A DNA stretch of 64,000 nucleotides, taken from assembly GCA_052426225.1 (NCBI GenBank), contig JBNJNM010000021.1, positions 434,001 through 498,000 of the forward strand, given 5' to 3'. Below the pieces are notes generated by a model. That model made no database searches. It saw only the letters and a list, made by a program, of their open reading frames with translations, and was not told the DNA's origin. This DNA comes from Zancudomyces culisetae HAW-14-8. Its lineage: Eukaryota > Fungi > Kickxellomycota. Shown here one piece after another: positions 4,044-30,382 of this stretch (position 1 is its first letter; the number at the start of each line of letters is the position of its first letter). The translations under genes and the position numbers were made by a program.

Positions 4044-5093
<1,050 letters not shown>

Positions 5094-25210: not shown

Positions 25211-26919
25211 TTGTCACTTCTGAGCTTATCCAATACTTGTGCTGAAGCAGCCTAAAATAAATGGTTAACTTGTATTACACATTTATAATTTTGTTTATCC
25301 TTGTTCATTTATTCATTTTTGCTTTATTGTGGTATTGCTAAGTCGCTTATTAGAAAGAGGTAGGACTGTAATGAGATCTGCGACCAATTGTCTATAGCTA
25401 CTTTTTTGTGGTACTATTGCAGCAAAAACACGGATAGTTATAAAGCCCATGCCACGTTTTTATGATAAAAATGTAAAAGTCTATCTTTTATTTACAGTTT
25501 TTTATGACTTTTTTTATAGGGTTTATACTTAAACATTTTATATCACTTTTATTTAGTTCGCTTTTTAATAACCATAATATCTTATAATAATAATAATATA
25601 ATAGTAATAACTAATAATAATCTGAATCGCCTTCACCCATAAATCCTCAAACTCGCTATAATTGAAAAACGGTAATAAACCAAAGCCTGTATGAAAGCCT
25701 GTTCCTTTTGAAAAGTATAAACCTAGGACTTTATCATATGACTAATAATAATTAACTTTGATTATAAAATAGAACTGATAACGACTTTCCCAGTTCACAC
25801 ATACTAGTCCTTGTTTTTTTTTCTGAGCCAAGTTAACTTTTTCCAATGTAATTAACAATGCATTTGCGACACAATTACTTGCTTTATATGGCTACACAAG
25901 TAAACCCACTTTACGTCTAATACTTTTCAACCACTATATTTGGGTTTGCTAATCTGTACCATCCAAACTATGTTTAAAATTTGTAAAAAAAGGACAAAAG
26001 CCGATAAAAATTGATAATTTCACGCTCCCATCCATTTTAGCAACCAGGACAGAAAAATATTGTTTAGCCCCACTTTTAACAGCAGAAACCGACTTTGACC
26101 ATTTATTTCTTTCTGAAAGCAATTATTATTTTGAAGGGTATGGCGTATTTGCATCAAAATTGAAACTGTTGCGAGATTAAAGGCAGTCGAGTAAAGCTCT
26201 CAAGCAGGAGGTGGAGCAGAAGGGTTAATATGAAACAAAGAACAGAGCTGATTTCAGTTTTTCTTTTCTTTTAGGCTTATTAGCTGCAAAATACTCACAG
26301 CACATAACACTCGTGTTAGCAATTCTGGTAGTGTTGTACAAGCAAGTACAGAGTTAATATCTATATTAGAAAACGGGTTGTGCATGCAAGCACAACAGAG
26401 TTTATTTGTTACCTCAAAGTCAGTGATTAAAATACAATGTACTAGAGGCCAATATATATTGCTGCATTCTCACTAAAATAAGCTGTATCTCCTTATTTGA
26501 AGCGGAAATAATAGATAGCTAATTCCTATCACTACTGTCTTGTGAATAGAAGGGTTGTAAATATATAACTCACAAGCTTTCCAAAAGCCTTCATAACAAT
26601 TTGAAAGCAAAAGCAATTCATGGGTAACATCCATTCATTAAGCTACCTTTCTTTGGATATGTGTACACATAAATCGATTGTAATGTGAAATAGTTTGTGG
26701 ATTTTGCTTATCATTTCCTGGAATATAACATGATTGGCGATATTTTTACACCTTGTAATTTTTAACGGATGACATGGTTCGTATCTCAAGATTTTTGTTA
26801 GCTCATTCGACACTTTTTATTAATTAAGCATTCTTAATTTTTTTCCTTTCTTCTTGAACAGGCGATCATACTAGAATTTCCAGCAAAAGAAAAAACAAAG
26901 GTTAAAATATATTCCAAAA

Positions 26920-27362
26920 ATGACAGCAAGAACTAGAATATACGATATCGGACACAAGGCCTTTGCGCTGACATTAATAGGCTCTTCAGGTACCATACGC
27001 CACTACTATTATTGATTCTAGATGCATATATTCGAATGATTACTCTTGATTCTATAAACCTACCCAAAAATAAATAAAAAGTATCTACAAACATAAGGCT
27101 CGACTTTTTTCAGGATTAAAATTTTACATAACAATACTATGAATAGCGTATGCACTTACGTTTGTTTGCGCAAGCGTAGTCCGAAATTACCACAAAAAAA
27201 AGCTTGCGAAGGTGCGAAATTTTACCTATTTACCTCCTTATCCGTATATACATCTGTTTTAACTAAAGGAAAAAGATAGAACACACAAGCAACAATCACC
27301 ATACTAACCCACATTTACCAACAATTCTACATTTTTAGGCCCAGGAAAACAATGATAAATGA
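26920..27362 (+). CDS. COX14: 52-aa cytochrome c oxidase assembly factor Cox14-like protein; exons 26920-26989, 27147-27211, 27339-27362
   Basis: MTARTRIYDIGHKAFALTLIGSSAYALTFVCASVVRNYHKKKLAKAQENNDK*. A D-x-x-H/Y-K/R motif precedes a single TM helix and basic tail, as in Cox14. GT-AG introns, with a TACTAAC branch point at 27302-27308. Confidence 0.8.
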
Positions 27363-27806
27363 TTCAATACATCGGATTTTTGCTTTTTTTTAGTAATTTT
27401 AGATTACAAGAGAAATATAGATTTTTGAAAGTGCAGCGAAAAGATTCTACTTGCACTAGATCGATCATTCGTATCTTACATGTTTAAATTAATAACACCG
27501 TAGTGGTACCTCCACATAAAATAAACACAAGAACAACCCTCTATAAATACATTCACTTTTGCCTCAATGTTGTAAGCACATTGTCTTGTTGAGTAATACC
27601 AATCATGATACAGTAAATATCCCTACTACTAGGGCAATTTCCTAGGCAGCAGTCGAACCAGTATGTATTTCCTAAAAATATATAAAAGTTCATGATACTT
27701 ATTATGGTTAGCCTTGCATTTGGCGCTTTGCCAGAGCCAGAGCTGTTGTGTATTCAAAGATGTGGCACTCGAAAAGAGTGTACATATAAGCAGTGGTTAA
27801 TAGTGC

Positions 27807-27812
27807 TTTATT
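27807..27812 (-). terminator. Candidate AATAAA polyadenylation signal of the SPS mRNA
   Basis: AATAAA on the minus strand, about 27 nt downstream of the SECIS candidate. Confidence 0.4.
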
Positions 27813-27838
27813 AAAAATGTGTGTTATCTGAGAAAAAA

Positions 27839-27947
27839 GACAATAACTAATCAGATCAGGCGGAGTGGCGGAAGCACCAACGAATGAAGCTAACTATCCT
27901 TAATTTTTCTCCTTTAACTACCTGGTCTTCACTCCTAGCTTTTTATC
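27839..27947 (-). promoter_or_regulatory. SECIS element candidate in the 3' UTR of the selenophosphate synthetase gene
   Basis: Helix I GAUAA..AGCUA / UAGUU..UUGUC. Core GUGAA (27932-27928) / UGAU (27853-27850). Helix II GACCAGGU / GCCUGAUC with 7 of 8 positions paired. Unpaired AAA (27915-27913) lies 12 nt after the core. Confidence 0.72.
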
Positions 27948-28073
27948 CCAGATTTTGGATATAAAATTAAAAAGTATTAAAAATAAGACGTATATGTAAT
28001 GAGGTTTCACAGCTAAAATTATAAAAAGTTGTTGAATTAAATTCTCAGCATTCGATGAAAGCTAACGAGATGC

Positions 28074-29623
28074 CTAAGCATGTGGATCCATGACTTCAAC
28101 GAATAAAGGTTCGTTAGATAAATATGCATATGGTTCTGAATCGCTGACACGTTCGAAGACCTCTCCTACCACAAACGCCGGCCAGCCTTCAAGCTCGTGC
28201 AGCTCTTTTATGAGCATTGGTGCATTTTCACGACTTATTGAGATCAACAAACCGCCTGAGGTTTCGGCAGAGTATCCCGTTTTTAAACCGTAATCAAAAA
28301 CATCGTTAACTCTGAGAGCATTCGCAAAGCATGGCAAGGTGTGAATTTCAAACTTTACACACGCTTTCTGGTTGGAGGCAAGTTGGTTCGCATGGCCCAG
28401 TATTCCAAATCCAGTGACATCCGTGGCAGCATGTGCCTTGTATTTGTGCATTAGCTGAGCTGCCTTGCGATTCAACCGGACCATACTGTCAATTGAGGAG
28501 TTGTAGAGTGAGATTATTTCTTCTTTGCTAAAAATTTCCAATAATTTCTTTTCCTTTTCTTTATTATAAAGCATCACATGCGCATTAACAGCAACGCGAG
28601 TTCCCAATGGTTTTGTAAGAACAAGTACATCCCCAGGTACCGCCGATACAGGTCTACACATCAAATATCAAAAAAATAGCAGTAAAGGGAAATAGTCATA
28701 TAAAACTAGCAAAGTTTTGCTTTACCCACCTTATCATCTCGCTTTCTTTGACTATACCAGTCGCAACACCACCGAGCAAGAACCATGGGTTTCTAATGGT
28801 TTGTCCTCCTGTCACAATGGTACCAGCCTCATTTGCATGATCTAGGGGTTATTTCAGAATGTCAAACACAACTTGAACGTTGTAAATATCGAATATTATT
28901 ATATATACTACAAAGTTAAGTACCATGAAATCCTTGGATTATTTTTTTTAAAACAATGTCCCTTATCTCATCCTCCAACTTCTCACTAACACCCAGAATC
29001 ATCAACATATTATCACATTCAGTAACTCCCATAGCATATAAATCTGAAAGGACGTTTGAGCACGTTATTTTCCCCTGTTTTTTTTTTAGCAATATTGTAT
29101 TTACATTTCAAATTTTAGCATAGAAACAAAAATTTACATACAATTTCCCGCCATTAATGTCAAAAAGAATAAGTAGAGATCTTAAACTATTTTCAACTTT
29201 ACCATCAAATATGGATCTTCTACTAATGGATAAAAGCAATCGGTAGTTTGCACTATTTTCAAGCCTTCATGCCTTGTATCTTTTATGCTAGAGTCAAATC
29301 CAATGTATTCGTTCTTAAAGTCGCTTAGTATTTTTTCTAATTTTTCCTGTGAAACTATTTTTTGTATCATATTATTCTCTAGATCTCTGATTCAACATGT
29401 TGAATGTACATTAACAGCTCTGAAAAAAATATTTACGTACCCTTACAACCTCATCCCTTGAGCCCTGAGTAGCTGGTTAGCCTCCACCCTTTTGGCAAAC
29501 CCAGACGCTCAGGGTCAAACTCTCCCCTTTCCTATTTTTTATGTTTCACTTTTAATTTGAATTTTATTTTTTTTAGAAGCGAATATTGAGCTATTGGATT
29601 TGGAACTGTATCTTTCATACCAT
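28074..29623 (-). CDS. SPS2: Selenophosphate synthetase (SelD/SPS2), selenoprotein with in-frame UGA; exons 29623-29621, 29531-29441, 29354-29203, 29074-28924, 28841-28730, 28653-28074
   Basis: Spliced product [37 protein letters not shown]...[32 protein letters not shown]...GGQTIRNPW...[13 protein letters not shown]...[13 protein letters not shown]...[10 protein letters not shown]. All five introns are GT-AG and phase-consistent. Confidence 0.95.
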
Positions 29624-30382
29624 ATAATTCTTAGTTTTTCTTGTGTATTCTCTTTCCAAGTATATTTGGTATGTCTAATAAGGATATCTTTATGTTTGTT
29701 GTATTGTCAGTTATATTATTTTAAATTGAAAAACATGAGTTTGGGGTTTGTAGATACTTTTATTCCGAAAAATGACACATTTAGCTTAGAACCAATTTAC
29801 TCAGCGAGTTAGTGGCCGAATCAAATCGCCAGATTCTTGAAACAAGCTTAAATTAACATCTCCGAAACCCAACAAATGTTGGTATTTAGATCAAATCACG
29901 CCACCAGATACAGGATTTACTGATGCTAAGATAACATCACAGTTAAATATATTTCCCTAACACACAGAATGAGCAATCGATTAAGATGGATATATCCAAA
30001 CTCACACTCACACTCACACTCACGCACCCACCACTTGATGTAGTAGCTACAATGCTTCGTTGACTATCTTTTAAGACGGGATTGGTACTTTTAGCCACGC
30101 AAATCAAAATCGGCACACAAAAACGATTGGACGACGTTGAATATGCTCAATTTTGCTATTTTCTCAACCTTTTGAAACGGCTTTTTCTTTTATTAATAAG
30201 GGGAGTTTTTTTTTTTGAAATAGCTACATGAGCGTTGATTGTGATTAAATTTTTTCAGGGTTTTCCTTACACAGACCATTATCAAAAATTGTATATATAC
30301 CACACATATTTTTTCTGTTCACTCGCTCCCTTTTATTGAGTAAAGAGGATATTCACACAAACACAGACCCAAATAACTCAAA

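Follow-up and report, generated by a model that had tools for sequence, protein, structure and literature searches.

The use of selenocysteine (Sec) in fungi was described by Mariotti, Salinas, Gabaldon, and Gladyshev, who identified a eukaryotic Sec machinery in Zancudomyces culisetae (10.1101/314781; Nat Microbiol 2019). Selenophosphate synthetase (SPS) was a selenoprotein in all of the Sec-using fungi of that study including Z. culisetae, while a recognisable SECIS was found in only five of the 16 fungal selenoprotein genes, most having none, and the fungal SBP2 was highly diverged (10.1101/314781). Both Sec in fungi and SPS as a selenoprotein of Z. culisetae have thus been in the literature since 2018/2019. 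In a Selenoprofiles analysis of the new assembly, SecS was recovered, and the selenoprotein and machinery genes were stated to be expressed; in the list of its files, SPS carries the label 'unaligned' and SelH the label 'selenocysteine' (PMC12611240). The file list suggests that the short exon carrying the TGA codon was missed in that run. Since SPS was labelled 'unaligned', an exon model with this exon in it is a modest addition to the annotation. The interest that remains lies in the recoding signal for UGA in Harpellales fungi.

The window analysed here is a stretch of 64,000 nucleotides from Z. culisetae HAW-14-8, and the SPS gene lies on its minus strand at 28074-29623. It was found, by reading 27800-29900 on that strand and by a script check, that six exons make up an open reading frame of 1089 nt, or 363 codons, ending with TAG. 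The introns are GT..AG throughout and their phases fit. The sole in-frame stop inside the model is a TGA at 29453-29451, in the context LKG-TGA-GCK. The features are as follows.

29621-29623, minus strand: exon 1, the initiator ATG alone, with a GT donor directly after it
29441-29531, minus strand: exon 2, N-terminal glycine-rich loop including the predicted Sec codon; the part before the TGA resembles Leishmania SPS (5l16)
29451-29453, minus strand: predicted Sec codon TGA (G-U-G-C-K), at the same codon in orthologues
29203-29354, minus strand: exon 3, NCBIfam SelD positions 47-76; tblastn border at 29203
28924-29074, minus strand: exon 4, AIRS N-terminal domain (Pfam AIRS), SelD positions 77-121; tblastn 29074-28925
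28730-28841, minus strand: exon 5, SelD positions 125-158; tblastn 28842-28732
28074-28653, minus strand: exon 6, AIRS_C domain (Pfam AIRS_C 2.7e-16; PRK14105 1.1e-31; SEPHS1 3e-38), with the TAG at 28076-28074

Every coordinate given in the first-pass annotation, which had been made from the letters of the window, holds on the minus strand, and its claim that this TGA is the single interruption of a frame with phase-correct introns was borne out by the script. The borders of exons 3-6 were reproduced to codon precision by tblastn of four fungal SPS proteins against the window. In all species compared, exon 2 is preceded at a distance of 75-190 nt by an ATG with an immediate GT donor, which is good in Smittium simulii, S. 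culicis, and S. megazygosporum and weaker in Furculomyces boomerangus. This recurrence across species supports the one-codon first exon. The splice junctions at the RNA level are those inferred from this sequence model. Among proteins, exon 6 best matched a 195-aa product named 'Selenide, water dikinase [Zancudomyces culisetae]', at 98% identity. This GenBank product corresponds to the last exon alone, which bears out the earlier claim that annotators truncate the gene, and the GenBank SPS products of Smittium and Furculomyces (264-318 aa) all begin downstream of the TGA. A codon-exact six-exon model is now available for a gene that had been cut down to its last exon in GenBank.

The family of the enzyme was assessed by homology searches run exon by exon, with the exon-2 query ending before the TGA. 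The matches to NCBIfam TIGR00476 are colinear over exons 3-6 (positions 47-76, 77-121, 125-158, and 163-260), and the bits per exon (21.6 + 35.1 + 25.6 + 92.1) come to about 174 by a rough addition of separate exon scores, against a cut-off of 125. The match to PRK14105 (SelD) reaches position 332 of 345, with an E value of 1.1e-31 in exon 6, and Pfam assigns exon 4 to AIRS and exon 6 to AIRS_C (2.7e-16). Among solved structures, the nearest to exon 6 is human SEPHS1 (3fd5/9hjt; E 3e-38), followed by Leishmania SPS. On the N-terminal side, the codons before the TGA carry the motif FDP...RLT...LKG of the SPS family, and the best match of the 26 residues preceding the TGA among all PDB sequences is Leishmania SPS 5l16, residues 23-45. 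Since this alignment ends at ...LKG, the TGA is the next residue, directly before G-C-K. The residue after LKG in 5l16 is presumably the catalytic Cys. By these matches the gene is a eukaryotic-type SelD/SPS, a predicted selenophosphate synthetase. The first-pass annotation had placed the TGA at the Sec/Cys position of SelD/SPS2 and had proposed an alignment to SEPHS2/SelD; the LKG-TGA-GCK context, the Leishmania SPS alignment running up to LKG, the colinearity of exons 3-6 with SelD, and the best structural match to human SEPHS1 agree with this reading of the gene. The SelD profile matches one locus in the whole genome, so that SPS is a single-copy gene and there is no Cys paralogue able to substitute for it. 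The finding of a single SelD locus is an addition of the present analysis.

Is the TGA conserved? The segment 26000-31500 of the window was compared with the corresponding region of another Z. culisetae assembly (GCA_001969505.1, LSSK01000071.1), and the identity is 99.35% over 5.5 kb. A D-amino-acid oxidase gene adjoins SPS in both assemblies. Exons 1-5 are identical between the two strains, and the TGA is present in both. As a separate observation, all seven exonic SNPs between the strains (7/7) fall in exon 6 (28109-28534) and cause four amino-acid differences, and the strain divergence of exon 6 is 1.2% against 0.44% for the region.

The corresponding codon is TGA in S. simulii, in both gene copies of F. 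boomerangus, in S. culicis, and in S. megazygosporum. In the orthologues of Harpellales, it is flanked by F(D/N)P...GLP...(F/W)RLT.YS.LKG upstream and by GCK downstream. Over 26 codons around the TGA, the pairwise substitutions among the five species number 41, 28, and 121 at codon positions 1, 2, and 3, respectively. The TGA never varies across the five species, while neighbouring codons vary synonymously (GGA/GGG, TGT/TGC). This pattern of substitutions indicates that the frame containing the TGA is under purifying selection, with coding conservation on both sides. A phase-1 intron directly after GCK (29432-29440 in the window) is present in Zancudomyces and the three Smittium species. In contrast, Furculomyces (nt 2977 of the fetched locus) is without this intron, and its frame crosses the TGA uninterrupted, with GCKVSQ continuous into the exon-3 sequence. 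An ordinary ORF of the Z. culisetae genome, a PSTK-like gene, ends in TGA; thus, the codon has not been reassigned genome-wide.

The organism, which had been guessed from the sequence to be an early-branching fungus, does belong to such a lineage, the Harpellales in the Zoopagomycota. A TGA in the context ...KG-TGA-GCK was also found in the SPS genes of Synchytrium microbalum (2453-2455 of the fetched locus), Polychytrium aggregatum (2408-2410), and Endogone sp. FLAS-F59071 (2258-2260), whose GenBank SPS proteins begin at an internal Met after the TGA. These three fungi are reportedly not among the species named in the 2018 preprint of Mariotti et al. The use of Sec may be wider in early-diverging fungi, to judge from these loci.

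I then turn to the Sec machinery encoded in the genome. A single tRNA-Sec gene was found on contig C12 (C12:2376020-2376107) with 57.9 bits (Rfam cut-off, 47), the next matches having no more than 39.8 bits, and ARAGORN calls this locus SeC(tca), with the anticodon UCA. The tRNA has a 9-bp acceptor stem, a 6-bp D stem, a 4-bp T stem, and a long variable arm. As for the surroundings of the gene, TATAAAT lies about 30 nt upstream (1470-1476 of the fetched locus), and a run of seven T residues comes right after the discriminator base (1590-1596). An upstream TATA box and a T-run are typical of upstream-promoter Pol III genes, a class including the animal tRNA-Sec genes. SepSecS (PF05889) was found with 219.8 bits at C14:532619-534278. 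The eEFSec is encoded by a multi-exon GTPase gene on C6 at about 499.3-501.9 kb; its best PDB match is human eEFSec (5izk/7zjw; 7e-19), with EF1A and archaeal SelB well behind among solved structures. Two other ORFs were considered as eEFSec candidates and rejected: the one on C13 is GTPBP1, and the one at C7:934425 is eRF3/HBS1-like.

For a 439-aa P-loop ORF at C21:3237127-3238446, the highest-scoring NCBIfam models are the two for PSTK, with 34 and 26 bits, far under the curated cut-offs, and the ORF has no PDB match. The true KTI12 gene is on C6 and is distinct from this ORF. The C21 ORF is a probable divergent PSTK. SBP2 was not found among the nine PF01248 (L7Ae) candidates of the genome, which are all ribosomal or snoRNP proteins: SNU13, eS12 (two), eL30 (two exons), NHP2 (two), and eL8 (two exons). 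For SelH, sought as the source of a second 3′UTR, the genome gave no candidates with PF10262 or TIGR02174. In summary, the first-pass annotation had predicted tRNA-Sec, eEFSec, SBP2, PSTK, and SecS. The tRNA-Sec search that it proposed yielded the single gene with SeC(tca), and the tRNA-Sec, eEFSec, and SepSecS are clear; PSTK is probable, while SBP2 was not found with PF01248.

Apart from the Sec pathway, it was observed that eS12, eEF1A, EF-Tu, NHP2, and other housekeeping genes occur in the assembly as collinear pairs with near-identical scores. The paired segments are C19 about 125-149 kb and C21 about 2.455-2.478 Mb; C6 about 2.16-2.44 Mb and C12 about 0.42-0.69 Mb (inverted); and C7 264.7 kb and 321.4 kb. 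The pairing suggests either large segmental duplications or haplotigs that were left uncollapsed.

Is there a SECIS in the 3′UTR of the SPS gene? Rfam gave no SECIS in 25500-29700 of the window, in 27800-28080 alone, or in seven orthologous loci. Rfam cmscan at E values up to 10 also missed a clear SECIS of S. microbalum; thus, the Rfam negatives are a weak test. For my own SECIS scan, the SPS loci of S. microbalum, P. aggregatum, and Endogone sp. served as controls. In S. microbalum, the scan found a textbook type-II SECIS 63 nt past the stop codon (nt ~4078-4129 of the fetched locus), consisting of AUGA, a 12-bp helix II, an unpaired CACAA, a mini-stem, and GA. Its recovery indicates that the scan works. 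In the five Harpellales SPS 3′UTRs, the same kind of scan gave nothing above shuffled controls. Thus, as far as the scan can tell, the Harpellales SPS genes are without a canonical SECIS, which agrees with the published figure of five out of 16 (10.1101/314781). Five Harpellales SPS 3′UTRs without a canonical SECIS, and a chytrid orthologue with a textbook one, are an addition of the present analysis.

A GUGA...GA stem-loop at 27851-27932 on the minus strand was also considered as a SECIS and is unsupported. Its folding z-score is -0.79. Helix II contains 8 pairs, a length exceeded in 83 of 100 shuffles (9 or more). It is without counterpart in other genera and without an Rfam match; the sole strain SNP in it (27893) lies in a loop.

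How, then, is the UGA read? One possibility is that it is read through, or that a near-cognate tRNA recodes it as one of the standard amino acids (Cys or Trp), with no classical SECIS/SBP2-dependent insertion of Sec. The failure to detect either a SECIS or SBP2 would suit such a readthrough, but a divergent SBP2 has been reported in Sec-using fungi (Mariotti et al., 10.1101/314781), and the intact tRNA-Sec, eEFSec, and SepSecS that the genome has kept would be otherwise useless. Moreover, strict conservation of TGA across genera would be unexpected if TGT or TGC served equally well, so that this possibility is very unlikely. It is more improbable still that translation starts at an internal Met downstream of the TGA, so that the protein would lack its N-terminus and the TGA exon would be a 5′UTR or an upstream ORF. 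The public annotations of six fungal orthologues do begin after the TGA; however, the stretch of 22 codons ahead of the TGA is conserved at the protein level, with substitutions at third positions, and carries the FDP...RLT...LKG signature, while the truncation would remove the catalytic loop G-U/C-G-C-K. As for a pseudogene, or a TGA arising from an assembly error, nothing speaks for it beyond the stop codon itself. Two independent assemblies of two strains agree, four more species have the same TGA, the gene has no other defects, and there is no second SelD locus in this genome, which keeps the Sec machinery; such an origin is scarcely credible.

Decoding as Sec is left as the best explanation. 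The gene structure, its family, the position and conservation of the TGA, the single copy, and the presence of tRNA-Sec, eEFSec, and SepSecS were all observed, and it is very likely that this is the only SPS/SEPHS2-type SelD gene of Z. culisetae and that its UGA in G-U-G-C-K is decoded as Sec by the fungus's own machinery. The points against Sec decoding are the SECIS and the SBP2 that were not found and the PSTK candidate scoring far under the cut-offs. The reading of the UGA as selenocysteine is itself almost certainly correct, Sec insertion being inferred from the genomic evidence. The first-pass annotation had proposed Sec decoding as well, and it is supported by the TGA that is invariant in two strains and four more species and by the tRNA-Sec, eEFSec, and SepSecS. 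In the proposed mechanism, the SPS mRNA would be spliced from six exons, and the UGA would be decoded by the tRNA-Sec and eEFSec of the fungus with the help of a cis signal in the SPS 3′UTR that does not fit the canonical SECIS. The Sec residue would be placed in the flexible N-terminal loop handling selenide, beside the catalytic lysine. The enzyme, whose activity is predicted from its sequence, would make selenophosphate for SepSecS. Since its product would feed SepSecS, SPS would be a selenoprotein and a member of the Sec pathway at once.

What could the cis signal be? The 3′UTRs of the five Harpellales SPS genes share one short motif.

28002-28011, minus strand: motif TGTGAAACCT in the 3′UTR, with the core GAAACCT in five Harpellales SPS 3′UTRs

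No 7-mer other than the core GAAACCT (28002-28008) occurs in all five 3′UTRs; the core lies 63-239 nt past the stop codon. Z. culisetae (28011-28002), S. simulii, and S. megazygosporum have the motif in the form TGTGAAACCT, and Furculomyces has TGGGAAACCT. When the first 300 nt were shuffled, any 7-mer common to all five appeared in 2 of 500 shuffles. GAAACCT is not enriched elsewhere in the window. When GAAACCU was considered as the 5′ or 3′ half of a kink-turn, no consistent pairing partner was found across species. I would suggest, as a speculation of low probability, that Harpellales selenoprotein mRNAs use a non-canonical Sec-insertion signal; UGUGAAACCU (28011-28002) may be a part of it and may have co-evolved with the divergent SBP2 of the lineage. 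The shared 3′UTR motif is a small, testable lead on how UGA is recoded in Harpellales.

Compared with known systems, the SPS of S. microbalum and those of Harpellales are alike in having LKG-TGA-GCK and in being cut short in GenBank to a model that starts at an internal Met. They differ in that the Synchytrium gene has an AUGA...GA SECIS, whereas none was detected by the scan in the Harpellales genes. Similarly, human SEPHS2 has a canonical SECIS, while none is recognisable at the Z. culisetae SPS. SEPHS1 has Thr at position X of the N-terminal LKG-X-GCK loop and is not known to be a selenoprotein. At the same position, human SEPHS2 has Sec and the Z. culisetae SPS has its TGA codon; the human SEPHS2 and SEPHS1 proteins and the Z. 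culisetae SPS have in common the SelD fold, with AIRS and AIRS_C, and this loop. Another close system is the published Sec-containing fungal SPS (10.1101/314781): the species, the gene, and the TGA are the same, and the window comes from another strain or assembly, at 99.35% identity.
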